Made by a program: the position numbers and the translations under genes. Below are positions 31,811-64,000 of a stretch of DNA of 64,000 nucleotides, in pieces; position 1 is the stretch's first letter, and each line of letters begins with the position of its first letter. Source of the DNA: Selaginella moellendorffii (Eukaryota > Plantae > Lycopodiophyta); assembly GCF_000143415.4 (NCBI RefSeq), contig NW_003314308.1, positions 819,769 to 883,768 on the forward strand, written 5' to 3'. The notes under the pieces are model-generated. The model searched no databases, was not told the origin of the DNA, and saw nothing but the letters and a program-made list of their open reading frames with translations.

Positions 31811-34800
31811 CAGTTTGGCCCAGGAAGGCCATACCCAGTGTTAGGTGATGAACTGACCATTGGGAAGTCCAAGACTAGAGTGAATACGGACCGACAAGCG
31901 GGGTAGCTTAGTGAAGTGTTCAAGAGCCGGCTTTAGTTCCCCCGGGAGATCGACTGGCCGATGCTCCTAGTCCAAGTGTGGGTGGCACTACCTACTTGGA
32001 TACCAGGCGTGGCTCAACGGAACTTCGCTCTAAGCCCATGCCTAAAGCACCCAAAGGCGGAAGGTGGGGAGAGTACCCAGGAGGCCCGCATAGGGCCACG
32101 GTGTTCCGAAATGCTGTCCCAAAGTCCTAGGCTATGGAAAGGAAGAGCAGTGATCCTCTGGTGTGGTGACCAATGACACAATCATGTGGTGAGGAAGTCC
32201 CAGAGGACAGTGGGACTTGGTGGTCGGGCCTGTGGGCCTTGATTTAGTGGCAGTGTTGGTGAACACGGCCATGGACAGAAAAGGATCTTGGTGGGGACTG
32301 TTAAAGGGATATTGGGGAAGGCTGTTCCCCATGTCTGTGGGCATCTTAAGGATGCTAAGGAGTGGACCTACGATGGTCACTCATGAACAGATGGCCCAAT
32401 TTTTGAGAGATGGGACTGCGTTGCAGGTGGTGTTGGACCACCGATGTGACCAAGGTGAATGGGCATGGCCTTAGCGTAACAGGCTAGTATGTCGGTGGTA
32501 CCTTGGGGTGTCGGTCATGGGATCGGACACGTGGAGCACTTGGACCAAGTGCAAAGGTTGAGTGGCGAGGATGCCATTCATGGGGCTAGCAAGCCCAAGT
32601 CCGAAATAGGACTTATGGAGGTTGTGAGTGAGACTCCTCCAAGTGGTCGGAGGTGTGGTTAAATGACTAAAGTAGAATGGAAAAATTAGTTGCTTACAAC
32701 TTGGTATCAGAGCGGTTCCTTAGTCCGACTTTTATTGGTGGCCAAACATATCACCACTTGTATTGGAATTGGAAGGTCCTAGATATGGACCTATCCTTGA
32801 GGAGTAGCATGTCGAGAGGACATGGCTCTCCACTCAAGTTCATGCGTGAACTTGTGCACGATGTGGTGGATGGAAGAGGGCCAGTAAGGGAATGACTTTG
32901 GGATCTTGGGAACAGTATAAGGTTTCCTCAGAGAGCTGAGGATGTGATTTAGATGAGCGTTTGATGCAGCAAACGGGCTAACGTAGTTGTGGTAAACAAC
33001 TATAATTGGGATCATAGGAAAGATGTAGACTCCAAAACAATAAAGGAGTCACAAGATTACCCTCATATAGTTGAGGCTGGTGCTCATAACTTTGAGACTG
33101 GAATTGATGACCATGGGAGGTCAAATACAGAAGAGGACACAAGTCCTTGAAGGTGGCTAGGGCTACCTTTAATAAATGCTGGAACAACTCAAGGAGTTGG
33201 AGGTGTATTTAAAGATGAGTTGCTATTCTTATCACATGGACAAGTATTCTTAAGGGGCAAAGGTTAGCCCCAAGAAAATCATCAAGTGTCGGAGTAACAC
33301 TTGCAAAGATGGTCCTTGTGAGTAGGACATGAATACAAGAAGTTGTATTCCAGCGAGTTGACACCTCGAAGACTAAAACCTCGCAGATTGTTGGATTAGC
33401 AAAGTCCAAAATGCTGGATGACTCAAGTGGAGTCAAAGAATAGTCTTAAGGGGATTGGTTGAAGCATTTGGACTGAGGTGTATGGTGCCTCATGAGGTAT
33501 GGAGAGGATCATAAGATCCAAGTATGAGAACAATAGGTATCTCATTGATGGCAAAATGTGCCATACTAAAGTTGTGGGAAAGATGTTCCCAGAAGAAAAC
33601 AACTTTGGTCCAGAGTTGGGTGCAAATACTATGGTGCGATGCTAACGGATAGTTAGCATGAGGAATAACTATATTAGTCCTGGCAAAGACCTAGACACTA
33701 ATAAGTAATGTCATAAGGATAGGCTCGTGGGGCCAATGGTGTGGAGACATTAAATGTGCCAAGGTGTGATACCTTGAAGTGATGTTGGTGGGTTCATAAG
33801 AACCCCTTGCCAAGGGAATCCCAATGGAAATGGGAATGGCATAGCCTAAGCTGGAAGGCATGTGATAGAGTGTCGTGACCAAAACAATGATGGAGGTGTG
33901 GAAGCACTAGCAATGAGTTGTAGGACTTGATAACTATAAGGCAACTAAGCAAAAGGTGCAAGATAATTAGTTAAACTGGTAGAAGGTAGCTACCCAAGAC
34001 TTCTTAATGGCATAAGGAAGTTAGATATACCCTTATGGGGGATAAATTGCTTATGTTGCGATATAGTAAGTCAATGTTGTAAAAGGGAATGCTTATTGTC
34101 AAAAAGGCCATCATTTGGGACATCCAAACACTCTAGAACACCAGGAGGTGGTTTTTAATGTTGCGAGGGCAATAAATAAGGCTCAAGGGACTAAGTCCTT
34201 AGCGAATGATGGATAGAAGGTGCTATCCAAATGTCCAAGGTTGCGAAGACGGGAGAAAACAGTCTACCCGAATTGGACAAAGCCAAAAATGGAATTTTGG
34301 CAAGGCTAGTGATGGGTATGTAAGGGCCCATAAGCAACAACGTTAATCCCGGTGTGTGGGATTATAAGGTGAGCATACCTGGATTGAGGAACCACTCCCT
34401 AGGCTATCGGGTTGGTTCATCTCTAAGAATACTTGCTAAGGCATGATAGAAAGTGCAAAGCTATCCTCTTAGTCTGGAGGAGAATGACTGAAGGAAAGGT
34501 GGGAGGCCAAAAGCAAGTAGTAAGGGGATAGAACTAAACCATAGGAATTGAAGGGCAGAACCAAGGGTGGTTGTGCCAATTGGGAGTGGAGAATCAAGTA
34601 GGGGCTCGAAGGTGTTGTTGCTAGCAACTATGAGGCTATGGAGAGTCTAAAATATGGAATTGTCCATATTAGACTATATGGCAACTAGAAAGCTTGCGAA
34701 AAAGGAGGCTTTAGCAAGCTAAGGAATAAAGTTCCTTTGAGGTTCCCAAAGACAATTCTAGGTAACTTAGTACTTAGAAAGGCTAAGTGTAAATGGTTCA

Positions 34801-36984
34801 TAGAACGCGCGAAACCAGAGTGGCACAGCAGAAGCGTGGTCTTGAAGCTTGCCATGAGGCAAGGCTATTAAGGTTGGGGAAGTAGTTCCCAAGTGTTCAA
34901 AGAGAGGGCTTTGAACCAAAGTCGATGGTCAAGGACTTTCACGCTTATGCAGGAACCATGTTACGGTGGTCGGAAGACTTGCCAAGCGAGATTGGCAAGT
35001 CGGGGGAACAAATACCCTAGTTGAAGGTGATAACTTAAAAAAGGGTGGGCCATGGGGCCAAGTATGGAGGAGTCCATGCATGATCACAGACGTGTCAAGT
35101 GAGAGGACTTGGCAGTGTGGAGGAACTAGGTTCCTAAGCTATGATCTATAGCGCGCTTTGAGTAAAAGTTGGTGCACCGGCGTGGAAAGTCACGCCAGGC
35201 ATCCTGGGTGATGCCATCCGTAGATGCATATACGGAGGTTGGGTTCGAGTCCCGACCCTCTAGTGCTTGGGTTCGAGTCCCAAATCACTAGGGCGTGGTG
35301 ATGGTTTGGAATATGAGGACACTCATTTTTCGGTGGTCATGGGCTCTCAATGAGGAGATTGGGTTGGGCACACCACCAAGCGAGGGATGCCTCGGAGTCG
35401 TGATGCACGGTTAGATTGCTTAGAGTGAAAGCTCGGCATATCTAACTTGAACACTTTGGTGCAAAGGGCACCAAGGACGTGGTGAATGAGATGGGGACAC
35501 CCAATCTTAGTTGCTATGGATCCTTGGCCGGAAGGGCTAGCTTGGGCGCACCGCTAAGTGTGGGGGATGCCCCCGGGGTCATGGTCAACAACTTGAAGGT
35601 CTAGAAGACCAAGTACCTCTTGGCAACTCTATTAAGGTGCCAAGGTGAGATCACTAAGTGATCTTGTGGCTAAATAAGGACAAGGTCCTTGGTTGGCTAA
35701 GGAATGAAGTTCTTGGTTCAAAGTGTTGATTTAAACTATTGATAATGGTGTGGCTTGGTCAAGGTGACTAAGTGGGAAGGACACCTAAGGGAAATGAACT
35801 ACGACAATACAATGGTATTATGAGTTCAAAGTGGTCTCTAGGAAAGACCTATGGGAAGGTCACAAAGTTGGGCCAAGGAAGGGGCCCATAGCAAAAAATG
35901 CTAAAGAGACCTACTAAGGGTGAACACCCTCTGGACTTGGCAAAGTGGAGCTTTGCCATGGAACCAAAAGAATACCTCAAGGAGGGAGGTAGTGATCCTG
36001 TGTTGCTTGATGTAACAATCAATGGATAGGAGCAAAAGACTAGTGGCCAAGTTTGGGCCATGGAATTGAATGGGAGGAATCCAAATGGCAAAGTTAGCTA
36101 AGGAACACTAATGTGTTTGATGTTAACAGATTGCGGGAAAGGAAGTGGACTTCCAAAAATAGATTCCCAAGTGCTCCAATTTGGCGAAGTAAAAACTCCA
36201 AGTGAGGAGCGGCAAAGTAACCAAAGGATAGGGCCATAGACAGCCCTGGCACAAATGAGGATAATTGGAATGTAGTGCCAAGGGTGGCACAAAATAGAAA
36301 AAAGGATGATGGTGCCCTCAAGTAGAGAACTTCCTAGGATAGGGAAGTGGACTTGCACAATATGTGCAATGCAAGGTGTTGGAGACACCTAGGAAATTGA
36401 CTTCAAACAGTCAAAAGTAAATGTTCCAAAGTGCAAAGGTTATGTCGATGGAAACTGAGACTACCCAAGAAGTAGCGGGATTGAGATATAGACGGTGTCT
36501 CTAATAGGTTTAGCGAAAACTAAACCAATAAAAGGAGAGAACCACTACAAATGGTCTAATCAGTCTCTAAGTTGGAGAGAGTATCCTCTTTAGAGGATGG
36601 GCAAGGCATGGCAAGCTTTCAGTATCAAACCATTGACGAATATTGGCGAGGGGCCAAAGATGGAAATGGTAATACAAATTGGTATTACTTTATAAAATAG
36701 TTTATCGTTCAATGAGGACATCGAATTTCGTCGATGGGTGGTGGAGTTGTGAGACACAAGATCCCTAGACCCCAAAGTGGAGCCGGAAAGGGTGCTACGT
36801 GGTACTGGCCGAAGCGAAAGCCAAACGAGCGTAACACGTTTGGACTAAAAGCTCTGACTTGGAAGGTCGAGAGCAGGAGTGGAACTCCCAACAAAGTGCT
36901 CGAGGAGTGAGCACGAGGTGACCAATAAGCAAGGCTCCAAAAAGAGACCCAAAAAGGACCAACACATGACATGTGGAAGTGTCT

Positions 36985-37468
36985 GAGATGGATCCAAGAT
37001 GGACCCGAGATGGAGTCCGAGATGGACCCGAAGTGGAGTCTGAGATGGACCCGAAGTGGAGTCCGAGATGGAGTCCAAGATGGACCCGAGATGGAGTTCA
37101 AGATGGACCTGAGTTGGAGTCCGAGATGGACCCGAAGTGGAGTCCGAGATGGACCCGAGATGGAGTCCGAGATGGACCCGAGATGGAGTCCGAGATGGAC
37201 CTGAAGTGGAGTCCGAGATGGAGTCTGAGATGGACCCGAGATGGAGTCCGAGATGGACCCGAGATGGAGTCCTAGATGGACCCGAGATGGAGTCCTAGAT
37301 GGACCCGAGATGGAGTCCAAGATGGACCTGAGATGGAGTCCGGGATGGAGTCTGAGATGGACCCGAGATGGAGTCCGAGATGGAACCGAGACCGAGACGG
37401 AGTCCGAGTCCGAAACCGGGACTAAGACCGAGTTCGAGTCCGAGTTCAAGTCCAAGTCCGAGTCCGAT
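36985..37468 (+). repeat. Longer version of the same minisatellite in the 3' LTR
   Basis: Directly visible tandem units, grading into CCGAGT hexamers. Confidence 0.95.
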
Positions 37469-39986
37469 TACTAATACAGGTAGTTGGGTGAAAGCCAAAA
37501 GCGATCGTCCCCCAGGGGGGGGGGGCTGCAGGGGGTTCCAAAAGTATAGTAGGGAGAGTGTGGGGGTTAGAGCCCAGTGGAACCAGTTTGGCCAGGAAAG
37601 GCCAGTTTGGCCCAGGAAAGGCAAGTTTGGCCCAGGAAGGCCATACCTAATGTTGGGTGATGAACGGACCACTAGGAAGTCCAAAACTAGAGTGAATACG
37701 GACTGACAAGCAGGGTAGCTTGGTGAAGTGTTCAAGAGCCAGCTCTAGTTCCCCCAAGAGATCGACTGGCTGATGCTTCCAGTCCAAGTGTGGGTGGCAC
37801 TATCTACTTGGATACCAGGCATGGCTCAACGGAACTTCGCTCTAAGCCCATGGCTAAAGCACCCAAAGGCGGAAGGCGGGGAGAGTACCCAGGAGGCCCG
37901 CGTAGGGCCACGGTGTTCCGAAATGTTGTCCTAAAGTCCTAGGCTATGGAAAGGAAGAGCAGTGATCCTTTGGTGTGGTGACCAATGACACAGTCATGTG
38001 GTGAGGAAGTCCCAGAGGACAGTGGGACTTGGTGGTCGGGCCTATGGGCCTTGATTCAGTGGCAATGTTGGTGAACACGGCCATGGACAGAAAAGGATCT
38101 TGGTGGGGACTGTTAAAGGGATATTGGGGAAGGTTATTCCCCATGTCTGCGGGCATCTTAAGGATGCTAAGGAGTGGACCTAGGATGGTCACTCATGGAC
38201 AGATGGCCCAGTCTTTGAGAGACGGGACTGCGTTGCAGGTGGTGTTGGACCACCGATGTGACCAAGGTGAATGGGCATGGCCTTAGTGTAACGGGCCAGT
38301 ATGTCAGTGGTACCTTGGGGTGTTGGTCATGGGATCGGACACGTGGAGCACTTGGACCAAGTGCAAAGGTTGAGTGGCGGGGATGCCATTCATGGGGCTA
38401 GCAAGCCCAAGTCCGAAATAGGACTTATGGAGGTTGTGAGTGAGACTCCTCCAAGTGGTCAGAGGTGTGGTTAAGTGACTAAAGTAGAATGGAAAAATTA
38501 GTCGCTTACACATGCATTGCTGCTCTGCCTAAATATCCATCCCGTGGAAGAAAATAATACATTTTCGCATCGCAATATGCTTGACACACAGGTGTTGCCC
38601 CACATTTATGACATCTAAACCTTGTAGCAACCTTATCACGCCTAGGGGGATTGATTGCTTAGCCTTCAAAAAAACACATATTTTTACTATGATTAGAAAT
38701 GCATTTCTCAGCGATACACTGAAGTTGTCCACCACAATGGACTATGGATACAGATCCATCGAAATAAGAGAAGTGGGTTGTCTTTACTCTGCACCAATTA
38801 TGTGGATCAAGATGTGTCTCCATACCCCTTTTCCTACTTGCTGAATTGGCCAGTGGAAACTCAAAGAATATATTCCCATTATAGGAAGAAGGAAGCTCCT
38901 CACTTCTTATGTACTTGAACTCCTCAATTCTAGCCATAATGATCGAGATTGCCGAAATGCATTATCCACTGTTTCAAAAATTGGTCCAAAAGGAATGCTC
39001 CTACTTGTCTGGGAAGCTATGTCAGGAAGCTCATCTTCTTCATTTTCGTCACTGGAGAGAATAACAACTTCATCCTTTACTCCTTGCACAGTTGGTTGTG
39101 AAGCTGATGCGCTCTCCTCTCCTCCCTTCAGAGATCTTGTAACTAAAATTTCCTGACCTGTACATCTATCAAGATCCCATTGAATCCCATTCTCTCCTAC
39201 ACCATTGTCGAGAAGAATGGATTTTTCTATTTGATTACCCTTATCCCGACATATATTCTCCAAACTAACTGATCTTGGCTTCAACTTGAATTTTTTGCAG
39301 AGGAAGTTCTCTCCTATAACACTCTTAGAGAAAACAATTGGAAGCTCTTAATCGAACTTCAAGTAGAATTCTCTCATATCTTTTCCTTGCTCAAGCACTT
39401 AGAAAAAATCTGGGGAGAAATTGACAAGAAAGAACAAAGATATTCTTCTGTATTGTGAGCATTAACTAGCTGTGTCCTTGCAAGGACAAGTTAATTATTT
39501 TAACAAAATATACAACCGTTTAGAATCTAGAGAGATATGAGAATCTTAAAGATCCACCCATATTTATTGTATAATTGATTGTGAGAGGAATAATATTGTT
39601 GAAATGAATGTGGTTATGAGTGAGAAGCGCCAGTCAATCACAAAAGTTGTAACATTGATTGCTTGTTCTCCCTCTCATCTCCATACTCTCTTCCCTTCAA
39701 AAGAGTTTTATTCTTTTGTGACAAGTGAGAGAAAGTCAAGCTCGGAAAGGTTGGTTTGTGCATGGTTTTTTCTTGATTGAAGCATTGAAGCATTGAAGCA
39801 CATTGAAGTGTTAAATGATTGTGTCCATTGATTGCCATCAAAGAGAATGAAAATCATGACCATTGATTGTTGCGTCTATTGATTTTTAGGGTTTTACATC
39901 TAGGGTTTGAGTAGCAAAGGGCGAAAGAAAGCGTTTCAACTTAGCAATGTGCTTCAAGATGCTCCTCAAACAAGGTATGCTTCATT

Positions 39987-50326: not shown

Positions 50327-50999
50327 TGTAGTGCACCTTATCTCTCTCCCCTTAAGCCAACTGAAAAAGGGGCAATTGCTTGATAAGAGAGCCCTTAGTG
50401 GCTATTTTATCCCCATTTATTCCCCAAGGTTCCAAGGATCCACGGTGACAGTATATCCAAATCTCATCCCATGATCACATATGCTACACTCACCCCCCCT
50501 TCAGAGATGTCAATGTCCTCATTGACTATTGATTAACAACCCCTACTAAGCCAAGGGGAACCAACACCTCCATTTCCACACTGAATCTACCAATCCTTCC
50601 ATTGTGTAGACTAGCTATTCCATGTGCAGCAACTAGTCATTCACCCATACCGCAGTCCCACAATGGAAACCTTCGTCCGTGGATATTCCACACAAGAGGA
50701 AGGACGTATGCATGGATCCCCAATATGTACGATTTCAAATTTAGGGGTGGAATATACCTTGCTTAAGGGTATATTATATTTTTAAGTAGCCACTAATCAA
50801 TGAGAATCGAACCCGTGCCATTTGCTCCGATACTAATTGTAGCGCACCTTATCTCTCTCCCCTTAAGCCAATTGGAAAAGGGGCAATTGCTTGATGAGAG
50901 AGCCCTTAGTGGCTATTTTATCCCCATTTATCCCCCAAGGTTCCAAGGATCCACGGTGACAATATATCCAAATCTCATCCCATGATCACATATGCTACA
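50327..50999 (-). mobile_element. TRIM (673 bp): two 162-bp LTRs, PBS, ~350-bp internal region, PPT
   Basis: LTRs 50327-50488 and 50838-50999 differ at about 6 positions. PPT 50489-50500. Extra PBS outside the 3' LTR at 50313-50324. Confidence 0.9.
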
Positions 51000-52220
51000 A
51001 TATCTGGCCAGTGATACTTCCTCTTGAGTAAGCCCATCGTCTTGGGCACTCCGTCGTGTCTTGCAAGAGGTCCGTCATGACACTCTTTTAAAGCTACCTT
51101 CCTTAGTTCCCCTTTTGGAACATACACCCTCATTTGCTTGTAATAGATGAGTCCGTTGCGTTCCGCATAGCCCGTTTTCTCTTCCGTTGGCAGCTCACCT
51201 CCCTGGTGAGCTTCCCGTGCCTCTAGATTCCTCAGCAACACTTCTTGTGCTAAACCATCGTTCTCATATGCTGTCCGCACATCGTCCCAATAGGTTGCTG
51301 TCGCGTTGGATATCGCCAACCTCAAGCTCGCTTTTCGACTTAGCGCATTTGCCACGATGTTGCTCTTCCCAGGCTTGTACAGAATCTTGTAATCAAACTC
51401 GGCCAAGGCATTGGCCCACCGACCCTATTTTCCTCTCAGGTTGGGCTGTGACAAGAAGTGTTTCATTGCCACATTGTCCGTATAAACCTTGAAGTGTCTC
51501 CCAAGGTAATGTCACCACTCCTTGAGTGCCTTGACCACCGCAAACAATTCCTTCTCGTGGGCAAACCACTTCCTTTGAGCCTTGTCCAACTTCTTCAAGA
51601 AGAACGCTACTGGATGGTTGTCTTGTTTCAAAACTTCGCCCAACGCAAAGTCCAAAGCATCCATTTTTATCTCAAAGTCCTTACCAAAGTCTGGTAATGC
51701 CAACACGGGAGCCTTCCTCAACTTCCCTTTGAGGTGGACGAATGCCACCTCGCATTCCGCTGTCTATACCATCTTCCTTTTTCCTGTTTGGTCTGTTAAG
51801 CACAAGGCTACTCTCGAATAGTGTTTAATAAACTTTCGGTAGTAGTTGCATAGCCCCAAAAACGCCCTCAACTCATATACATTCGATGGTCGCTCCCATT
51901 CCTGAATCGCTTGGACCTTCTCTGGGTCCACCTTGAGCCCGTCCTGGCCCACCACATGCCCTAGAAACTTTACCTCTTGTTGAGCAAAGTCACATTTGCT
52001 CTCTTTAGCATACAGTTTGTGTTCCCTTAGTTTCTCAAACACCTTCGGCAAGTGTTCGGCATGCTCCTCTAGTGTCTTGCTATAGATTAGGATGTTGTCG
52101 ATATAGACGACCACAAAGTGATCCAGATAGGGTACAAAGATATGGTTCATCAACGCTGAAAACGTTGCTGGCACATTGCACAGCCCAAAGGGCATCACCA
52201 GAAACTCAAATCTCCCATAT
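51000..52220 (-). mobile_element. Gypsy element B, downstream part (RT C-terminus, RNase H, integrase Zn-finger)
   Basis: [31 protein letters not shown]...H...YHWP. Continues the frame broken at 62224. Confidence 0.92.
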
Positions 52221-52662
52221 AAGCTCTATTTCGTTAAAGTGGGAATTGTCATTATCCCACTTGTAAAATAAGGTTTCCAAACCTTTATATAGTATATAAA
52301 TATAACAAAATTCAACTGCATTGAGGCACATGCCATTTTATTTTAAACAAGGAAATGTCTACTCAATCACTTCTCCTCCCCCTGCCACTGCTTCACCTCT
52401 CTCTTCTCCTTGTTATCGTCGTCCAATTTCTTTCCATCCTTTTAATATTGGCTCAGTTGCTCCGAGTTTAGGTGGAGCCCAAGCCCCCATTCAATCTTTA
52501 CTTTCCCCTTATTAATAAAACAACTGCGTAGACTTCCAATAACATGCTGTAACACTTCTAGTATAATGCAAATCCTCTCAAAGAATTGTCTTTTAATATT
52601 AATACAATGGCATGGAACCCCATGCCATAATAAGTTACATTTTTAAATAAATACATGCCATC

Positions 52663-53547
52663 TCAGACTGTTATTTTTTGCCTCCAACGCCTATACAATA
52701 ATCTTGGAATTTCATCACTCTCCACACTATCAGGATTTAAACCCAATAGTAATGTCATCTCTTCTCTAATACGTCCACGCTCATGTTCAGTGGTCGAAGA
52801 ACCCATCCGGTTGAGTAGATTATGGAGATGCGGATAGTGTTTGGCTAGGCAATATACATGCCATAAATGATGACTGGTGTCTGTCCGATCAAATGGCTTT
52901 TGATATACCGTTCCATCTACCATTTGGTTGATTTCTGCAGCCACCTCCTGGACTGGCCAGTTCTCTATCACCATCGCTCCAAGCCATTTTGCAAGGTCCC
53001 CCAGAACATACGGTTTCTTCTCCCTAGTTTCCATACTACAAGAGATGGGGTGCACTGCATATGTGTGCGTGTTCGCTGCAGTTTTAATCGGCGAGTCATC
53101 GATGATGAGGATTTCACTTGACCTAGCAGTCCGGTTCATCACTACAGCCTCTGGCTTGACGAAGATGGGCTTGCTACCCCTCACATGGACCATAGTCAAG
53201 CAATCCTCCTGCGTTAGGAGAAAGTCAAATGGTAATATTACTCGCGTCTGATCGTGCATCATCTGTAGCAACGTTAATGCATTGTGGCGCATCATGGATG
53301 TCCAAACTCCCAATTGCAAATTGAACCCGGCCCTCTGTTTTAAGTGTCGCATGGTCATTATTAGATCCCGTAGTTTCTCCCGTGTGATTAATGTGAATCT
53401 GTCTCTTTTGACCAACTTGCGACCGTAGGCTTTGAAGGGTGCAGTGACATTCGAGGACGAGCCACGCTCATGGGAGAAAAGGACACCGTTCAGATCAAAA
53501 ACGATACAGTACCTTCGCCGTGACTCTGAAATGAAATGCATCAGCAT
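52663..53547 (-). CDS. FCP1/NIF-like HAD phosphatase domain (transposon cargo, probably a terminal exon)
   Basis: CIVFDLNGVL (motif I variant), LGVWTSM (motif II), K, ILIIDDSPIK (motif IV). Confidence 0.75.
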   Translation of the reverse strand: MLMHFISESRRRYCIVFDLNGVLFSHERGSSSNVTAPFKAYGRKLVKRDRFTLITREKLRDLIMTMRHLKQRAGFNLQLGVWTSMMRHNALTLLQMMHDQTRVILPFDFLLTQEDCLTMVHVRGSKPIFVKPEAVVMNRTARSSEILIIDDSPIKTAANTHTYAVHPISCSMETREKKPYVLGDLAKWLGAMVIENWPVQEVAAEINQMVDGTVYQKPFDRTDTSHHLWHVYCLAKHYPHLHNLLNRMGSSTTEHERGRIREEMTLLLGLNPDSVESDEIPRLLYRRWRQKITV

Positions 53548-55417
53548 AAAAAATGGTACAAGTCAATTTTACCATCTACAATATTAGCGAATGGTGCACC
53601 TGATGGTCGTTGAGAGGGTTTTGGTCGAGGAAATGTGAAGGGCGGAAATACTCTCCTCTGCAATGTGGGGTCAATCGCATCCGATGGCGTGTGGGCACAT
53701 GCCATTTCAGCTGTAGACTCTGGTACAACTGGCTCAACAGTGGCATGGGGTGGTTCCGATGGCGTGTGATCACACGCCATTTCAGCTGGTGCCTCCGTTG
53801 GCAAAGTGGACATGACCGAACAGGCAGCAGGGGTGGTGTAGGGAGGTTCCAACGGCGCGTAGTCAGATGATTGGGCACACGTTGAGTCCGTTGGAAATGA
53901 GGATACGACCGGCTTGGTGGCTGGGGTGGCCTCATGTGGGTCCAATAGCGCCTGGTCACCGTCAGTTGGATACGTGGACAAGATTGACTCAGTGGTATGG
54001 GCAGCATCAAGTGGAGCGTGGTCAGCTTACTTGGCGTTGATATGGATAGTAGCCTCCACCAGCTCTGATGACCCTTGCAGGCAAGTAGAGTCCACTGGTG
54101 GATCCATATGCATGTCCAAATATCTCCCTTCGATTGAGATGGTATCCTCCCTACTGGCTACTAAAAACAAACTCATTAGCACATTGAATCGACTATACTG
54201 TATTTACCATCAACTGCTATTGAGGAACTAGGACCAATATCACTTGGGCGCACTGCTGATTCTGAAGGATTGGACATACGTTTTGACCCTTGCTTGGCAC
54301 TATCCTTCCTCGACACTAAAGGCTAGAGTTTGTATCTTAATTCAACTGAATAATCTCTACTTACCATTTGCTCTGCGACCTACATGAACAATGTTAGAAA
54401 TGGTAAAAGGTTAGGAATGGATGTACTATTATTTACCTGATGGTTTGTCTTGTATGACCTTCCTCCGCTGCTCTTTGGCCACCTCAGGCTGACCATCGTC
54501 GTCGTCGTTATTGTGATCGTCACCATTGTGAGGACCATCCAAGTCTTCTTCATCCTCCTCTTCTTTGTCCTCCTCTTCGTCCTTCTGCTCTTCCTGCTCA
54601 TTATCTTTCTCTGGCTCCTCATCCCCCTCCTGCATTTCTTCCATAGGCTGCTCAGGCTGGATGGCTTGTTCTTCCAGGACCATCTTGGGAAAATCATCTG
54701 GCCGAGTCTCCATCTCAAAATACAAGACATCCATAGCCTGTTTTAGTGCGTGACCTAGGACCGTATCCTCACCCGACTGTCTTAACATGGTTTCTGCACG
54801 TTCTTGCACCCTTCGAAGACGACGAGATGAGAAAAACGTGGCCCTGACTTGAAAAGCATCCCTCATCCATTGTACCTCTCCATTGAGATTGGGGAAGGGG
54901 AGTCCGCCATAGGAATCTGAGTCAGGAGGTGGTGACTGGCTGCTTTCGCACACACGCTATAACCGCGAGGCATTACCTATCATCTTTTCGTTGCCCTTCT
55001 TCCTTTTCAAATCAAACGCCTCTGATCCCGACGACTGTCCAACGTGCTTTCGCTTTTTATGACCACTGTCAGTTTAAGCTTGGCTGGTGCTTGCCTGTTT
55101 TGCCTTTGAAGAAGTGTCTCCTGCAAGGAATGACATGAGACCACACGCCATTGCAAATATAATTTGTACCTCCTTTTTTCCTATTGCTTGTCTGTTTGTC
55201 CTTCTTCGACGCGCCACCAGTGCGCTTTTCAGTCCTCGTGTCTGAATATTCACAACGATCTATAATCAAAATGGTGTGAGGCCTCACGTGACCTTACCTT
55301 GTGCAGATTGTGAGCTCGGCCCAACATGGGTATCTTCAACAGTAGCTGTTAACGCCGTTTCAGCATCTGGGGGTGGCCACGCTCCTGCATACAGAGCTTG
55401 TGAGATAATATTTAAAC

Positions 55418-58012
55418 TTAAAGTGCGTACTCACCAGGTTCACAGAGAAGATACTGTTTTTCTTTAGCAACTGTAATTATATGCTCCATTGAAGTCACCT
55501 CTTCAATGGAGTTTGTCACCGCAACACATAGGACACCCTTGAGTAGTGCGGCTCGAAAGAATAGTCTGCCGCAGTTGTACTCGACAATGCATTTGCCCTT
55601 GGAGTCGGAAGCAGGTGACCCACCCGCTATTTCGTTGAAGACCCAGCTGAGCATTTCCCATGCTGCACCTGGAGCTTTCTCTAGATTCGAAAGCTCTATA
55701 GCCGTCTTCAGTTCCTCAGGCACGGGTAAATTGACCTCCCTCAGATCAATTCGATCAGCCTTGTCGAACGAAGCTGGGAAGTCACTCCAGTCCCACTCTG
55801 CTGCAGGACCAATAACAAGGGCGAGTGTGAAGATGCGGACATTCGTCGGTATCTTCTTCTTAGCCATTATCCCATGGATCTCCTGCATCTCCTTGCCTTT
55901 CAACCGAGCCTTCACCTCGTTCAAGGCCTTCTAGAACTTGTGATAGGATTCGGAGTCGTAGATCATATAGTGGACTGAAGATTCCACCTCCGCAAGTCCC
56001 ACCATTAAGTCAATGATGGAGCTGACTTCATCTGCATGAGTGATCTCCTTGTTTGTGAAGTCCATCACACAAAAGATGTTCTTGACTTGCTCATCTCCGC
56101 GGGAAACGATGCTCCTCCACCTTTGATCCTCATCCGAATTCACGTATACCCGGTAAGGTTCTCGATAGGCCTCTGCTGCGGGGTCGAGCTGTTTCTGAAG
56201 CCGGCGGTCGACATCCCTCTTAATGAAATTTGGATACTGATCCAACTTCTCAACTTTACTTTTCGTGGCATCCCGCAGCAGATCGATGAACTTGGGGGCC
56301 CCCTTCACGTACTCGTCGATGTCTTCATTTGACAACTCCAGCTCTTCCATCATCTCTTGCGTGGTGTCGATGCTCACCCTCTCCACGGCCACTTGCTCGA
56401 AGATCCAATCCTTCAATAGCACACGAGCTCTCAGAGTCGTGCACAAGTCCTCGTATGTCATAATATGGTCGGGAGTCATTTTGGTCTTGTTGAAGACTAC
56501 CTCACCACGTAGAAGAGCATTAGCCACTGTCAGAAGGTCGTTGTTGTCTAGAGACCGTGAGAAACGCAAGGCGTTGAGCTTCAAATCATTGGGCTTCCAG
56601 CCGTCCTCCACACCCATTGAGTTTAGCAACTCCCCGTCATGGTACCTCCTCAGCACATCTACCCATTTGTCAAAAACAACTTTTGTCGCGAGTAGAATGT
56701 TATGGATGCTGAGTGTGTCATTGACCCCCAGTGTTTTCGAGAGAAGACTCGAGAATTCTTGCAATGGAAATGGCGTGAGGCCACATGCTATGCCACATGC
56801 AACGAGGCTTACCTACCAGGCGTTAGTTGCTAGTGCACGTCCTTGTCCTGGTTTTTGTGGCTTCTTCAGTTGAACCCAGGGCTTCCGTGTTCATGCCAAT
56901 GTCTCGTGCAGACCCGATTTGTAGCACGTTTCTTGCTTGACATTCTGCGTGTGGGAGATGGATATGATAGATCGGAGGGGCGAGTTGCCTTTTATCAGGC
57001 GGACAACTCTTGTCTTGAAAACTTTCTTCACCTCCTCACCCACCATAATATCCACAACTATCTCTTGCATCGCCAAGCTAGAATGCTGCCCGGAGACGGC
57101 ATAGAACCGGATGTTCTGATCGTCCAACACCTTCCTATTGATCAAGTCTGGAAACCTCGTCTCGCCCTTCATTGTTCGGTAGTAGGGGATCACGTCTGCG
57201 ATGTCGGGTGTTACTGGACTTGCCAGCATCTTCTGCTTCAGTTTCTCCACCCACTCATCAGATACTAGCCTGTGGTTGTATTTGCTTTGGATGTCGATAT
57301 GACTCACGTCGATTGTATATACTTTGTTGGAATAGTAACAAGTACTATTATCTGCGACGATTTTTGCTGCCTCTTCTTGCTCTTTCTGCTTTTTGCGGCT
57401 CTTCTTTTTGGTGGGTGTAGTGTTCGAACCCGAGGCAATGGCATCACCGAGTAGCTTCTTTTTTGGACCAGGAGAGTCGGACGTCGGCTTGAGCTTGACC
57501 ACCCTTTTCTGCTTCGGGGTAGTTTCCAGATCGACCCCCTTCCCCTTCGCTTCGCGAACTGGAGGCACTCTCAACGGCTCAATGTTGGAATATAGTTTTT
57601 GAACATCGCTGTAGGTGAGGTCCGTGGATTCCATGTGATCTTCATAGACCCGCAGCGTCTTTGAAATTGTAGGCCTCTTAGACAACCTCTCCCTAGCTCC
57701 CTCTAGGAATTCCTCATAGCCGCTGCCCCCCTCCGGGAAGCCGCTAGGATGTGCAAGGTGGATCTTGAAGGCGGATGCTGTCTCTACCACAAGTGCCAGT
57801 CCATATTCTTGCATGGAACTGCATGGAGTGTCTATCAGTTGGATTAGGATCCCCATGCATTCTTTTCTCCCACCATCTGTGTTGTACAGCCTCAGATCCT
57901 CGCCTTCCATCCCGAAAGTCCAACTGGTGAGCTCCTCCCCCTTCTCTGCATCCACATTGACAGTGGCTGGAAGAAGAACGCAATTCCTCGTTTGTTCAGA
58001 AATGCACAACAA
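55418..58012 (-). pseudogene. ParB/Srx-like domain plus degenerate DNA amino-methyltransferase-like fold (transposon cargo)
   Basis: NHRLVSDEWVEKLKQKM...FYAVSGQHSSLA (ParB-N-like). C-terminal FCVMDFT...EKAPG...LSWVF...KCIVEYNCGRLFFRAALLKGVLCVAV resembles beta-class MTase motif order. In-frame stops at 56891 and 55931, small intron near 56760-56813. Confidence 0.55.
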
Positions 58013-58430
58013 TTAGAGCTGACTGATGAAAAGCTAGCAGCTAGAAATAACGTGATGCCACACGCCATTCACCACTGCATCAGATGTCTTGAGGCTGCAT
58101 CCTAAGATGGCGTGAGGCTACACGCCATCTGTAACCGGACTGCACTCGAGAGCCCAATCGGTGCATGCCAATGTTGCTACTGAATGGCATGTGGCCTCAT
58201 GCCATTTTCTACTTGGCCTAAAAGACTTACCATTTGAAGTCGAATGGAGGCGTGACAATCGAGGCCGGACTCGCTGGCGAATGTGCATTGTGTGTGCAGC
58301 GGATCGTAGCAGCAAGGCTACTCTGCCACTTACAGTTGGAGAGTGGCGCTGAAATCTCCCGGGACGCCAAGTGGGCTGCGTGTGGGTGGCGGAGTGGGCG
58401 GCGGAGTTGGCGGCGAAGTTACAAACTGGG

Positions 58431-58650
58431 TGTGTCTTGAAGTGGACGCCGATGCACACGAGCGCGATGCGAGCGCGAGTGTGATGCAAGTGCGAGTGGA
58501 CGCCGATGCACACGAGAAACCTGTAGAGAAGGTAGATGAGCGCGAATGTGAGCGTGATCGCGAGTGGGAGCGCGATGCGAGCGCGAGTGCGAGTGTGATG
58601 CGAGTGTGCGAGCGCGAGTACGAAGCAAAATGCAAAACCTAGCCTCACAC
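58431..58650. repeat. Low-complexity GCGAGT/GCGC-rich repeat between the divergent cargo and transposase genes
   Basis: gcgagcgcgagtgtgatgc-type units. A short direct repeat follows at 58684-58817. Confidence 0.7.
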
Positions 58651-60106
58651 GCGCAAAATGTCACGACGGTTGGTAATCCCGCCACGTCATCATTCCTCGG
58701 ACTTGGGCGCCACCATTAATTTCTGGATCGCCGTGCGCATGCATGCACGTGAAATCCAAAAGAAATCCGCAACGTCATCATTCCTCGGACTGCATGCACG
58801 CGAAATCCAAAAGAAAGATCATGATTAGGATATCATTTAATACTCTCGTTATATTTATACCATGCATGATTGGATATTCCAAAGCATCTTGTATTTCCAA
58901 AAATGGTAGATGTTCAGCTAAATAAAGAAATTCTATCTGTTTCTATTTTTCTCTCAAATCAATATTATAGCGTGTGGGCTCATGCAATTTTGAACCAAAG
59001 AAACCCAAAAAACGTTGGACCCAAAATATTTTGAAAAAACCCAAAAAACCTTAAACATTTTAAACCCAAAAATCCAGGCATCCTGTGGCGTTATTCCTTG
59101 AATGGCGTGTGGGCGCATGCCATTTTCAGGGCCAAATGCTGAATGGAGAAAAATTCCCTTTCAGTGCAAATGCTGCAAGAGGCAGATGCCGAGCACAAAG
59201 GACTGTAACTACCTCACATGACACAGATAAACTTTTCTCTATTTGGCAAAGATAAACTTTATAGCGTGTGGGCTCATGCAATTTTGAACCCAAAAAATGC
59301 ACCAAAAAATTCTCGGCGTCATCTAGCGTTATCTCTTGAATGGCATGGGGCTGCATGCCATTTTCAGGGGCACATAAGAGTATATTCCTAGGATATTCTG
59401 ACATGCGCGAGATTTTTTTGAGTTTTCTGGAGATCCAACCGTTAGATCGCAACTAGATTTTACAGAATGGTATACAATGCCCTTCTTGATGACCCTGCAG
59501 AGAAGCATCTCGATCGGACACCACATGAGACCACACGAGCCTTACAATGTTTCAGGGGCATTTGCCATAGATCCAACCGTTATTTTGCTCAAAGATTCTA
59601 CAGTTTGGTGTGCATTGACCTTTCCATTGACACTGCAAAGGGACACCACAATCAGATGCGGGATCACAAAAAACCAACTTCACTAACTCTGGTTTCACCA
59701 AGATCTACGTAAGGAGTTATGAAATGAAAGGACCCTCTCTATTGAAATGTGTTTATGGTCCTAGGGGCATTGTGACATATCAAAGGATTTTGCATCAAGT
59801 TCTGTATTTGCATGTTTATCAAGCTACTGAATTGCTAAACCCTAAACCCTAAACATGTGGCAAATGCTGCATGAAGAAAGATGCCCTTTCTGGGCAAATG
59901 CTGTAAGAGGCAGATGCCGAGCAGATGTATCTCAGGCTAGCGAAGGGGACAAACGAAAGCTAGCTATAAACATGACGGGATGCAAATAGATTACTAGGCT
60001 GGTCCTGCGAAAATCAAAAACCATAATTGAAAACATTGAAAATGCAAAAAGAAAGGTTTATAATATTTTTGAATTTTAAGCAACCAAAGGAATGTAAGTA
60101 GGGCAT

Positions 60107-61123
60107 GTGTTTGTAAGTTTAAAAATGCCTCAACCACTTAAATTCCCAAGTAAATACTTGGCGATGCTTGTTGCCAAAGGCATATTTGAAACGGTTACAC
60201 TTGGCTTTCTCATGGTTGGGCACACTCATGAAGACGTCGATGCCATGTTCAATCACCTGGCAGAGTCCCTCCGGCGATCCAATGTCCTCACCCTCCCACA
60301 ACTCTACGATGAATTCCAAAATTGCATCAAAGGCACTGTTGAAGCTGCACTTCTGACAGAGGTTCTAGACTTTAAGGGGTTTGTAAGAGGCTACATCAGG
60401 GACGGATCCGAAACGCTGATTGGCCACTCCAAGCCTCTTCAATTTCATTTCAGCATGCATGACGGTGCTCCAGTGATGAGGTACAAGATGAGAGAATGGG
60501 ACACAATGTGGCTGCCAGTGGACGGCATTGAACTCTTCAAGAGAGATCCCATAACTGGGGAACCTATGATTCCTCAGGGTTCCCCACGGCCGATGCACCC
60601 GGATGGACTCAAAGACCAGCAAAGTATAGTGGCCGGGATTAGACAGCATATTGCCTTCTGGAAGAGGGGGTTGGTGTTTGGTGGAGAATCCTATTTTCAG
60701 AGGTGCAAGCCTTTGCTCGAATACTCGAAGAAGATTATATCTGCTATCCAAAATGGGCCGGTTGTATATGAAGAATTGAAAGAGTCCTTTTGGCCAGAAC
60801 CCAGAGCACCAGATAGTAGCGGAACAATGTCCTCTGGAAATGCAGTGACAGATAACGATGTTGAGGATCACTATTGTGGGCTGAGGAACAAGAAGCCGGA
60901 TTCAGCATTCAATCCAGTACAGGTCTGCAAAGGAATGGTCGTGCTTGTCAGACCCAGTAATAAAAAACAAATGATATGGGTGGGACGCTGCATCACTGAT
61001 GCAGAGGAGGACGCGGAAACTAACTCCTTCAATGTAACTGTGGAGTGGTTCAAGCCAAGTTCCGGATATATGAAGGATTGCCTAGAAAAGAGATGGGTGT
61101 TGAATCCAACAAAGATGATGTGA
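60107..61123 (+). CDS. C-terminal part of a DDD/E transposase (Sola1-like), 5' portion deleted
   Basis: TLGFLMVGHTHEDVDAMF motif and a C-terminal beta-rich segment (GMVVLVRP...IWVGR...VEWF). The upstream catalytic motifs are absent. Confidence 0.7.
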   Translation: MFVSLKMPQPLKFPSKYLAMLVAKGIFETVTLGFLMVGHTHEDVDAMFNHLAESLRRSNVLTLPQLYDEFQNCIKGTVEAALLTEVLDFKGFVRGYIRDGSETLIGHSKPLQFHFSMHDGAPVMRYKMREWDTMWLPVDGIELFKRDPITGEPMIPQGSPRPMHPDGLKDQQSIVAGIRQHIAFWKRGLVFGGESYFQRCKPLLEYSKKIISAIQNGPVVYEELKESFWPEPRAPDSSGTMSSGNAVTDNDVEDHYCGLRNKKPDSAFNPVQVCKGMVVLVRPSNKKQMIWVGRCITDAEEDAETNSFNVTVEWFKPSSGYMKDCLEKRWVLNPTKMM

Positions 61124-62223
61124 CATATGCATTTACCAATCACACGTGCATAAATCTAATAATATGGCGTGTGGCCCATATTAATGGCACATAAACCCAT
61201 ATTGTGGGCTTATGTGCTTTATGTACCATCATTCCCTTGTAGCGTGTGTGTTGGTTTCCTTTTATAACACAACGAACTCCATATTTTAGGGTGAAGAGCG
61301 TTCTCATGGCAAGCACAAAATCTGTAAGTGAGGCAGAAAAGGAGACGGAGAAGGAGATAGGTGAAGATGTAGAATATATAAGTCTTCCAAACTCCCCGTA
61401 CTATACTCCAGGTGATCATTTTTCTGAACAAACGGCAACATTAACAACTATCGAGAACGCCCCAATAACGTCAGTGACAACAATCCAAAGTAAAACAACT
61501 GACCCGGAGAAGGATGATAGTACCGCTGAGAGTACCAAAAAGGAGGTGTCCACTAGCGCTTAGGCTTATAATGGCGTGTGCCCTCATGCCATTTACTTGA
61601 TCACCAAATACCTTTTTCCCTTTGCACTAGTATATCTTAATACCGGTCTGAGAAATAGAATGGCATGTGCCCTCAGGCCTTTTACTAAATCACCTTTGAA
61701 AGAAATGCAAACCTCTATGTCGTAAAGAAAAGGTACTAGAGAAATTCCTTAATAATATGAATGTTATTTAGTTTCATGAAAATACACTAAGGGTCAAATG
61801 AGTTAAATGACTTCTCCAGACTAGCAATGCCTCTTGCTACACCTTCACAATTAGATTCGTTAGAAAAAGATAACATTGAATAATATCTAAATGTTCTCAC
61901 CATTAAGTTATATGTCTGGCTAATAGGAATGACATTCATCTTGGAAAGCTCACCACACGCTCAATGAACAAACAAATAATGTGTGCGCGCATGCCATCAC
62001 TCTTCTTTAGCTTCAGATTCGGCTTGTTCACCTTGACAATGAGATTTATTATACAACCAGATGGACTCAGTCTGGACACAAAGTCACCGCGCTAGTCACC
62101 ATGCCCCAGATATGTCTAGCCCCTGGACAAAAAACATATAATTTCACGTCATTTTCAAATACTTGAAAATTTGTACCTAGTCCCATTTTACTGAATAAAT
62201 CCCACTTTAAAGAAATAAAGCTT

Positions 62224-64000
62224 ATATCTAGTTCGACAGATTGTCTTCTTGACATCTTCCTCTGCTACCCTGATCTGGTAGTATCCTGACCTCAGGTCAA
62301 TCCTCGAGAAGTATTTTGCCTTTCCCAACCTATCGAATAGGTCCTCAATCCTTGGCAAAGGGTACTTATTCTTCTTTGTATACTTGTTGAGCAACCGGTA
62401 GTCTATGCACATGCACATAGATCCATCTTTCTTTTTCACAAATAACACTGGTGCCCCATACGGTGACTTGCTCAACCTAACATACCTTTTGTCCACCAAC
62501 TCGTCTAGTTGGCGCTTGAGCTCTTCGAGTTCTTTTTCGTTCAAACAATAGGGAGGACGAACCACCGCCTCAGCACCTTCGACCAGCTCAATCTTATGTT
62601 CTATCGGTCGTGCGGGGGGCAACCCTGCCGGTAACTCCTCCGGCATGGTATCCTGGAATTGGTCCAACACCCGTTGGATCACTAAAGGTACTTCTTCCGG
62701 TACTGTCTTTTTGTTACTCTTCACCGAGAGTAAGCACAAAAATGCTGCCTTAGTTCCTTTAATGAGTGGTCCTCTTGTGGACACCAGGTTTAAGCAGGAA
62801 TCTTTGGCCTTGCTTTGCCCTACCTTTAGATCCTGGGCCTCCACCCTAAATCTTCTTCCTTGGGCATTCGCCAGTACCACAAGGTTCCTACCTTGTCCAT
62901 GTAGGGCTACCACGAACCGATTGAACCAATCCATTCCGAAGATCATGTCAAATCCCACCATGTCCAACACGGTGAAATCCATGTCTACTTTCCATGTCCC
63001 TACTTGGACTCTCGCTTGTCGAAGTACCTCATCGGTGCTTTGGCTACCTTGAACACACTCTATAGTCCTTGGTTTGCCTAGCCACTGCACCGTTAGTCCG
63101 GCTTGCCGGACTATATCTGCAACCACAAAATTATCCGAAGCACCCGTGTCAATAAGGATCTTAACAATGCTACCTCCGAGCTTCCCTCGGAGGGCTAGTA
63201 GATGTCGCGAACGACTCTCTACCAAAGTTGCCCGTGTAATGAGTAACTTTGAGTTAGGGACTGAATCACATACCTCAGTTTGGACTTCATCCGACTTGAT
63301 AGCCATATTGGCTCTGGCCTTCTTCGGGTAGGGACATTCCCTCAAAAAGTGTCCCGCTTTGCCGCAGTTGTAGCATACGTTGTTTTCCACGCTGCTATAT
63401 GACTTGACCTTCTTATCCGTGGGTTTGTCTCTTTTTGCTTGACTCCCCCACGTACTCACTCGCTGGCCACCGGATTTGCCTTTCCGAAACCCCGAGGACT
63501 CATTCTTAGAGAAACTCTTCTTGAATTTCCCTTTGCTATACGTTCCCCTTGGTTTGGCCCCTTTGCTAAACGTGGACCCCAACCCCATCCCTATCGTGTT
63601 CCCCTTTAGCAGGTTATTGTTGAAATGCACTTTGATGGCCGCATCCAACACTTCCTTGTAGTTGGTTAGGTTCTAACGCATCACCTCACCGCAAGCCCAG
63701 GTTTGCAAACCTGATATGAAGGCATGGAACGCATCCATATCCCCCATGTCTGTAACAAGTATCCTTTTTGCCATAAACCCATTCACATACTTCTGAATGG
63801 TTCCAGTCTGCTTCAGCCTACTCAGCTTGTCCCTTAGATGTAGAGTACCATTCGGAGGAACGTAAGTCGCACAGAACCTCGCCTTCATCATTTCCTAAGT
63901 GGCCACCAGTCCTTCGTTGGCCTCTATCATTCTCCACCAAGACTTGGCATTATCTGCCAAGTATGGTTTTGCACATGGGACCTTCTCTGAGCTCGGTAAC
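62224..64000 (-). mobile_element. Gypsy element B, upstream part (gag, zinc knuckle, protease, RT N-terminus)
   Basis: [60 protein letters not shown]. Runs off the window. Confidence 0.95.

Follow-up and report, generated by a model that had tools for sequence, protein, structure and literature searches.

Sola1-1_Ec32, a 21.5-kb transposon of the brown alga Ectocarpus, carries an opposite-strand gene for a 1104-aa protein that combines a ParB-like domain with an N4C/N6A DNA methyltransferase (MTase); it has a 4-bp target site duplication (TSD) and AACCG-CGGTT termini, and its best match in Repbase is Sola1-1_PPa (PMC12477816). In the red alga Bostrychia, the Plavaka element PAG3 encodes a ParB-like protein with a 2-oxoglutarate (2OG) oxygenase, and tandem arrays of inverted repeats adjoin the gene (bioRxiv 10.1101/2025.02.11.637652). 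The products of such ParB-type accessory genes of giant algal transposons have been proposed to bind and modify the element that encodes them (PMC12477816; bioRxiv 10.1101/2025.02.11.637652). Here we describe a Sola-like DNA transposon of the lycophyte Selaginella moellendorffii, located at positions 52221–62223 (10,003 bp) of a 64,000-nucleotide stretch of contig NW_003314308.1 (positions 819,769–883,768, assembly GCF_000143415.4). Below, this whole stretch is called the window, and all coordinates refer to it.

The element shares the layout of the algal ParB-plus-MTase genes: within a transposon bounded by terminal inverted repeats (TIRs), a gene on the strand opposite the transposase encodes first a ParB-like and then an MTase-type domain. 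Its likeness to Sola1-1_Ec32 also includes a block of the transposase at MVGHTH (aligned by eye) and, under the more likely of two parses of its ends, a 4-bp TSD and termini that start with AA. It differs in being shortened, to 10 kb, in having TIRs of 24 bp rather than 282 bp, in an MTase-like domain without catalytic motifs, and in the addition of an acidic and Pro/Thr-rich tail and an NIF phosphatase domain. It should be added that PMC12477816 reports no palindromes for the Sola1 family and that the accessory proteins were compared by description only. PAG3 is similar in that a giant DNA transposon encodes an accessory protein with a ParB-like domain next to element-specific inverted-repeat arrays; it differs in its CMC/Plavaka transposase and in its effector, which is an oxygenase and not an MTase-like domain plus a phosphatase.

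The element is a decayed copy of a multi-copy transposon of the Sola1 superfamily that landed in the reverse transcriptase (RT) gene of a Ty3/gypsy retrotransposon and has retained the second gene of its family. Taken as a whole, the explanation that we consider fairly probable is that of a decayed, non-autonomous Sola1 copy whose second gene would read the palindromes of its own element. Both this kind of system and the hypothesis of self-binding are already published. What is distinct here is the host, the loss of the MTase motifs, the acidic and Pro/Thr-rich tail with the NIF domain, the dispersed palindromes with CpG in their arms, and the comparison of palindromes across lineages.

The element, its palindromes and its decay

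The limits of the element are clean, with TIRs at both ends. From 52221, the left end reads AAGCTCTATTTCGTTAAAGTGGGA, and the right end (to 62223) reads AAGCTTTATTTCTTTAAAGTGGGA as its reverse complement; the left TIR (52221–52244, plus strand, with AAGCT at its start) and the right TIR (62200–62223, minus strand, found by comparison of repeat pairs) have 22 of 24 bases in common. The flanks read ATAT on the left (52217–52220) and on the right (62224–62227). When the element and one ATAT are removed in silico, an uninterrupted minus-strand Ty3/gypsy RT frame results, with the classic motifs including YIDNILIYS; because the flanks joined with a single ATAT give this open frame, we regard the element as a clean insertion into the retrotransposon. 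The exact boundaries (24-bp TIRs with two mismatches and an ATAT duplication) and the restoration of the host RT frame on removal, both claimed in an original prediction made from the sequence of the window, were confirmed.

The same prediction had treated a TA duplication with TAAGCT ends, under which the element is 2 bp longer on each side, as an equally valid parse. The empty site of this single copy is identical under the two parses, so the TSD length is not fixed by the window copy, which fits both. However, Sola1-1_Ec32 is listed with a 4-bp TSD, which makes the parse with a 4-bp ATAT duplication more likely, and TA was set aside as an equal parse. The gag–protease–RT frame of the host Ty3/gypsy (minus strand, 50975–52198 and 62188–63651) is open on each side and continuous once the element is removed, which indicates that the retrotransposon was young or intact when it was hit.

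The sole long plus-strand ORF of the element (60107–61123) is the C-terminal third of a Sola1-type transposase, recognised by its match to Pfam DUF7869 (E 1e-27, profile positions 79–190 of 192) and by its relatives, with the motif VGHTHEDVD at 60215–60241; a literature search returned no papers for DUF7869. The block AKGIFETVTLGFLMVGHTHEDVDAMF of this ORF and the block GRGIMRTVTLCFMMVGHTHIQIDQIF of Sola1-1_Ec32 are identical at 16 of 33 residues around TVTL.F.MVGHTH. This alignment was made by eye with the sequence printed in the supplement of PMC12477816 and is not a formal alignment with the Sola1 entries of Repbase. Because the block lines up with Sola1-1_Ec32, itself nearest to Sola1-1_PPa of Repbase, the label "Sola-like" given by the original prediction together with the VGHTHEDVD remnant is justified, and membership of the Sola1 superfamily by transposase homology is supported by DUF7869, by this block, and by the metagenomic relative L014.

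L014 is one of three relatives (L014, L015, and L016) obtained by scanning JGI metagenome contigs with the transposase. Its transposase is full-length and is encoded in two consecutive ORFs of 695 and 373 aa. The window remnant matches only the latter, with 38% identity, and the 695-aa N-terminal part has no match anywhere in the 64-kb window. For this reason about two thirds of the transposase must be counted as lost, and the capacity for self-mobility with it; judged by its sequence, the window copy is a deletion derivative and non-autonomous. A 63-bp direct repeat (89% identical; 59133–59195 and 59861–59923, 728 bp apart) is found just upstream of the remnant ORF and is possibly related to the deletion of the transposase N-terminus. 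In L014, three copies of a repeat of about 95 aa (VGV.I.EVFDGD.PL), at 24–335, 431–721, and the start of 718–2805, precede the full-length transposase, the third being the N-terminus of the 695-aa ORF.

The original prediction had also described an element-wide palindrome. With up to two mismatches allowed, ATGGCRTG-N6-CAYGCCAT occurs in 14 copies, all within 52607–61681, against an expected 0.07, and none of 100 shuffled sequences reached 14. These strict copies start at 52607, 53684, 53759, 55130, 56770, 58047, 58107, 58184, 58967, 59102, 59261, 59340, 61571, and 61660; two weaker, subterminal palindromes start at 52314 and 61975, 94 bp and 226 bp from the element ends. A scan of the 64-kb window showed that the palindromes are confined to the element, and the description holds with 14 strict and two weaker copies inside and none outside. 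In the best copy, which starts at 53759, the palindrome is perfect over all 22 bp, and each arm contains one CpG. The R and Y positions of the motif are those at which CpG alternates with CpA/TpG, and the ancestral arms therefore each held a CpG.

The palindromes are dispersed, with spacings of 60–160 bp or larger. Fourteen of the 16 lie outside long ORFs, and the other two lie in a Pro/Thr-rich ORF whose coding status is doubtful. Seven are located in the central non-coding region between the two divergent genes (58047–59361), in which repeat comparison also revealed internal duplications of about 240–290 bp; one is in the gap after the ParB-like ORF, and the remaining non-coding copies are distributed over the intervals that separate the ORF pieces and over the 3' flanks. 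The central region also contains a G+C-rich imperfect tandem repeat (58118–58650, with units such as GAGCGCGATGCGAGCGCGAGTG) that adjoins the palindrome cluster.

The decay of the copy, which had likewise been predicted, is evident from three in-frame stops in the second gene and from the reduction of the transposase to its C-terminal third. Other copies are available from runs of the same organism (X3–X19 and X20), whose contigs are about 98% identical across the whole cargo stretch, have high word depth, and carry 12, 15, and 32 extra bases relative to the window copy. Seventeen small runs of one sample (X3–X19, each with about 3 million letters of contigs) assemble the element at a word depth of about 69, which points to data of low coverage from which high-copy repeats alone can be assembled; the family is therefore probably abundant in the genome.

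Between the window copy and X3, 72 of 83 differences are T or A in the window against C or G in X3. Among 33 such sites that were listed, 16 are in CG and 8 in CHG contexts (24/33), compared with expected shares of 23% and 17% (40% together), and the stop TGA at 56891–56893 falls on one C-to-T type site. We read this C-to-T bias at CG and CHG as the mark left on a silenced copy by methylation and deamination of its cytosines. Raw RNA-seq data gave three reads over the element in one run and none in another, which is a thin test. With three stops, the altered phosphatase motif I FDLNGV, the C-to-T bias, and nearly no RNA reads, the window copy is inert.

The second gene and its domains

The second gene is located on the minus strand and runs divergently from the transposase gene. 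Between 58012 and 55421, a single frame is almost continuous, with in-frame stops at 56891–56893 (TGA), 56813–56815 (TAG), and 55931–55933 (TAG); after 55421, three more minus-strand ORFs follow in other frames. The resulting order is a ParB/Srx-like domain, a conserved middle part, an MTase-like domain, an acidic tract, a Pro/Thr-rich tract, and an NIF/FCP1-type HAD domain.

ORF A (56894–58012, 373 aa) has a basic N-terminal part followed by the ParB/Srx-like domain (approximately 56894–57361), recognised from homologues and fold, with SGQHS at 57080–57094. The gap between ORFs A and B (56765–56893) includes the TGA stop, of which position 56893 is changed from A to G in other copies, the TAG at 56813–56815 directly before GTAAGC, and the palindrome at 56770–56791; it is probably a short intron plus decay. 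ORF B (55931–56764) comprises the conserved middle part and the N-terminal half of the MTase-like domain, with VMDFTN at the motif IV position (56051–56068), and ends at the third in-frame stop. The C-terminal half of this domain is encoded by ORF C (55418–55924), which reads YNCGRLF at the motif I position (55559–55579), where the metagenomic homologue L005 has VLDFFSGGMG.

Further downstream, ORF D (54429–54953) is acidic; here the other copies have their 12 and 15 additional bases, and they have the 32 at 54947/54948. ORF E (53541–53981) is Pro/Thr-rich and consists in part of two 75-bp repeat units with one palindrome each; its coding capacity is uncertain, and a second long ORF overlaps it in another frame. 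A putative 47-nt GT-AG intron (53526–53572), read by eye, would join it exactly in frame to ORF F (52663–53547), which encodes the NIF/FCP1-type HAD domain (PF03031) with FDLNGV at 53482–53499, the motif II-like GVWTS at 53296–53310, and the motif IV-like IIDDSP at 53089–53106. Donor-like sites occur at or near the ends of the ORF pieces: TAG/GTAAGC at 56812, CTG/GTGAGT at 55434, CAG/GTAAAT at 54436, and ATG/GTAAAA at 53572. From these sites and the in-frame 47-nt interval, we favour a single multi-exon second gene.

ORF A has no match in Pfam, NCBIfam, or PHROGs, and its relatives have no ParB match there; a word-based homologue search with the 373-aa sequence gave no match, and PDB sequence-profile searches with the ParB-like alignment gave nothing useful. 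An exhaustive phmmer search (1.8 billion representatives) returned four weak relatives (E ~4e-4), which have F[FY]A[IV]SGQHS and further positions in common, and a profile search added one more. An AlphaFold model of the domain was built from six sequences (pLDDT 60, pTM 0.57). When it was compared with the PDB by Foldseek, all matches with a probability of at least 0.9 were PadC, Noc, ParB, KorB, or sulfiredoxin (E from 8e-3), and the list as a whole was dominated by the ParB/Srx superfamily, with a few low-probability matches to OmpA and Hsp90. VIA-align gave Z values of 5–6.9 for 22 entries, nearly all of them of the ParB/Srx superfamily, with 30 chains at Z of at least 5. Matches among the AlphaFold database (AFDB) clusters (E from 6e-5) include a "ParB/Sulfiredoxin domain" and a "DGQHR domain", as well as region 311–446 of a 1005-aa "DNA methylase N-4/N-6 domain-containing protein" (A0A388MEC1).

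On this basis, we accept a ParB/Srx fold for the domain with moderate confidence, in keeping with the prediction of a ParB/Srx-like domain, which these fold matches bear out at moderate strength and with no match to a profile hidden Markov model (HMM). A lead from the Atlas search pointing to fungal DUF3723 was confirmed by no other test, and a literature search on DUF3723 together with ParB was empty.

In bacteria, ParB, Noc, and KorB act at palindromic sites on their own replicons; on plasmid RK2, the repressor KorB has about a dozen scattered sites. The ParB–parS, Noc–NBS, and KorB–OB systems (PDB 7bm8, 7ol9, and 8qa8/8qa9) supply the best fold matches of the domain and also have a short palindrome in several copies on the own replicon. 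The present protein differs from them in the replaced Arg of its GxxR-type motif (SGQHS), in its eukaryotic host, and in the absence of a partition ATPase.

PF01555 methyltransferases are often fused to ParB domains in phages and plasmids. For the MTase-like domain of the second protein, a protein-language-model search with the L005 piece placed PF01555 in 82 of the 100 nearest Atlas clusters. An hhalign comparison of E. coli YhdJ and six phage PF01555 enzymes with the two-lineage family alignment was collinear over 207 columns, with a score of 20.3 against 13.6 ± 2.2 in column shuffles (0 of 100 reached it; the program's own P-value was 0.06). It placed the motif IV region on NLAVVEFSA/NIFCVMDFTN and motif I on VLDFFSGG, that is, in the permuted order, with motif IV before motif I.

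At the motif I position, where beta-class amino-methyltransferases have VLDPFxGSGTT, L005 reads VLDFFSGGMGLKAALLE and the window copy IVEYNCGRLFFRAALLK; L005 has thus kept VLDFFSGGMG, and motif I is lost in the window. At the motif IV position, the window has VMDFTN (NIFCVMDFTN) and the metagenomic homologue L001 has VVEFSA (NLAVVEFSA), so that DPPY, replaced by DFTN and EFSA, is absent in both lineages. A beta-class N6/N4 DNA methyltransferase, of the type of YhdJ, is the probable ancestor of the domain, which differs from such enzymes by these replacements and by the lack of an HMM match. An active methyltransferase was rejected as a candidate on account of the absent motifs (DPPY in both lineages, and FxGxG also in the window), and methyl transfer by the second protein is unlikely. 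To the MTase-like fold of the original prediction, the hhalign and language-model results lend weak support, while HMM matches and catalytic motifs are missing.

ORF F matches PF03031 (NIF) with 27.1 bits, above the gathering score of 21.8 (E 3.7e-6, profile positions 1–126 of 160), as expected for the FCP1-type HAD domain that had been predicted. As in FCP1/SCP phosphatases, the nucleophile Asp, the motif II Thr/Ser (GVWTS), and the acidic pair of motif IV (IIDDSP) are kept. In contrast to these enzymes, the window copy does not conform to DxDx(T/V), its motif I being F-D-L-N-G-V with Asn in place of the second Asp, and no BRCT or other known partner domain accompanies the phosphatase domain. 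So far, the phosphatase appears specific to the family in this organism.

Relatives, and what may read the palindromes

The relatives considered here are contigs of public metagenome assemblies that encode the weak homologues of ORF A. In L001, L003, L004, and L005, the ParB-like ORF is followed by a homologue of ORF B (19–31% identity). L005 has, in addition, an ORF that can be aligned with ORF C and, like its counterpart in the window, leads on to an acidic stretch. The order of ParB-like domain, middle part, and MTase-like domain with acidic tract is thus kept in distant metagenome loci at 23–31% protein identity. With respect to the linkage of the cargo beyond the window copy, on which the original prediction had made its case depend, this order in the relatives and the whole cargo at about 98% identity in the runs of the same organism speak for it; the NIF domain was not found in the relatives.

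Palindromes also accompany the gene in these lineages. In L001 and L004, whose arrays were scanned, and in L005 and L006, which belong to the same family and show the repeat units in translation, GGTCRCAACGCSGCGTTGYGACC forms 26-bp arrays, which precede the ParB-like ORF and also occupy the space between it and the ORF that follows. L002 has TCACRCGAGGCTCGYGTGA in 26-bp arrays downstream of its ParB-like gene. The regular period of the arrays (L002, 1095–1373; L004, 10–190 and 1365–1484) corresponds to about two and a half helical turns. The ParB-bearing lineages with arrays differ in the sequence of the palindrome, and its position beside or inside the gene is kept.

We propose that the second protein would recognise the palindromes in the manner of ParB, KorB, and Noc at their palindromic sites and would thereby mark the DNA of the element. 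Once bound, it could bring its other domains to the element and regulate the transcription or chromatin of the latter: the phosphatase may act on a phosphoprotein such as the C-terminal domain (CTD) of RNA polymerase II (Pol II), and the MTase-like domain may serve as a binder of DNA or S-adenosylmethionine (SAM) rather than as an enzyme. That the protein is a reader of the palindromes and influences the chromatin or transcription of its element is a tentative proposal by analogy, with the case for it and the case against it nearly in balance.

A more specific version, which we consider improbable, is that of a methylation-sensitive reader of its own CpG palindromes, in which the dead MTase domain would be a DNA or SAM sensor and the tethered FCP1-type phosphatase would act in cis to dephosphorylate the Pol II CTD (or the Pol IV/V machinery specific to plants). 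If this were true, the element would control its own transcription or escape RNA-directed DNA methylation, as a eukaryotic chromatin-level counterpart of plasmid KorB/ParB. VANC, a protein encoded by the Arabidopsis transposon VANDAL21, is reported to recognise short motifs of its own family, which are not palindromes, and to change the epigenetic state of that family. The likeness to VANC would lie only in the proposed self-recognition, and there is no relation in sequence or fold to the protein described here.

Several observations weigh against a palindrome-reading second protein. Protein and palindromes are linked by co-occurrence. Within the ParB-like domain, the model is of low confidence, and the GxxR-type nucleotide motif, which is GERRxR in ParB, GCHR in Srx, and DGQHR in DndB-like proteins, reads SGQHS: the window and each of the four homologues that extend over the motif (P0002, P0004, P0005, and L005) have retained Gly-Gln-His but carry Ser in place of Arg. 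No helix-turn-helix (HTH) DNA-binding domain is among the features recognised in the second protein. For the MTase-like domain, neither the window ORFs nor the relatives matched PF01555 or any other MTase in Pfam, NCBIfam, or PHROGs or by PDB sequence profile, and the AlphaFold model of the L005 piece has a pLDDT of 34. The NIF domain is joined to the remaining second gene through the putative 47-nt intron and has no match in the metagenome contigs of the relatives, which are short.

The unity of the gene is affected as well. Of the intron-containing divergent unit on the minus strand that had been predicted, the opposite strand and the donor-like sites at the ends of the pieces were found, but the RNA check yielded no spliced read, and contigs of X20, a run of uncertain type that is perhaps RNA, are unspliced across two of the putative introns, the 47-nt one included. 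Finally, L003 has a ParB-like gene and no palindromes in its 1.9 kb, the two weaker palindromes of the window element are subterminal, and in L016 the arrays flank a transposase, and the 3 kb of this contig contain no ParB gene.

The last two observations suit the strongest competing explanation, according to which the transposase binds at the palindromes, or these are a general recognition tag of its lineage, with the ParB-like gene as an accessory that does not read them. The subterminal and internal repeats of other TIR transposons act as transposase sites, and L016 has a truncated, 45%-identical transposase that is flanked on both sides by densely repeated copies of a palindrome of its own, CCCACGGGTGAACACCCGTGGG. 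Nevertheless, the L016 contig begins inside an array, so a ParB gene may lie beyond it, and the other two transposase relatives, the full-length L014 (4.3 kb) and L015 (2.5 kb), have no palindrome array. In the window, most palindromes are far from the ends and seven are clustered between the two genes. The arrays of L005 and L006 adjoin the ParB gene with no transposase ORF within 2–2.9 kb upstream, and Plavaka, whose transposase is unrelated, also has inverted-repeat arrays beside its ParB gene. We consider a transposase-bound role of the palindromes unlikely, though it must be taken seriously.

It is far less probable that the minus-strand ORFs are unrelated, functionless host fragments gathered by Pack-type capture and that the palindromes are a simple repeat that spread inside the element. 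Such a history would fit the lack of RNA support for a single spliced transcript, the absence of the NIF domain from the relatives' contigs searched, and the many stops of the window copy. However, the domain order is retained although the lineages agree in only about one residue in four, which implies long-term selection on the second gene and excludes a one-off capture; a nested unrelated element was ruled out by the same conserved architecture. Moreover, the same pairing of domains is published for the Ectocarpus Sola1 element, the AFDB protein unites a ParB-like region with a DNA methylase N-4/N-6 domain, and the palindrome varies in sequence by lineage while its place beside the gene stays.

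The least probable explanation, that the palindromes act as RNA or DNA structure (hairpins in introns or untranslated regions that feed small RNAs, or cruciforms that promote recombination) and not as protein sites, draws on their being perfect or near-perfect inverted repeats with arms of 9–11 bp in presumably transcribed, non-coding parts of both genes, but the arms are short, their sequence is conserved and not merely their pairing, and the regular 26-bp spacing in the relatives' arrays suits protein binding on one helix face better.

Elsewhere in the window, a 6-kb region (32001–38000) has a strong positive GC skew (0.24–0.27) and a positive AT skew, unlike the rest of the window.

Implications for the family

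For the annotation of the S. moellendorffii genome, the window copy is to be treated as a dead, non-autonomous derivative. Until now, ParB-type accessory genes of giant DNA transposons were known only from brief descriptions in brown, red, and green algae; the family represented by this copy would extend this type of transposon to S. moellendorffii.

The phosphatase domain that it adds points to transcription or chromatin as the target. The lineage-specific palindromes beside the ParB genes sharpen the published guess that such proteins read their own element, and the CpG in each arm of the window element's palindrome makes this guess directly testable for dependence on CpG methylation.

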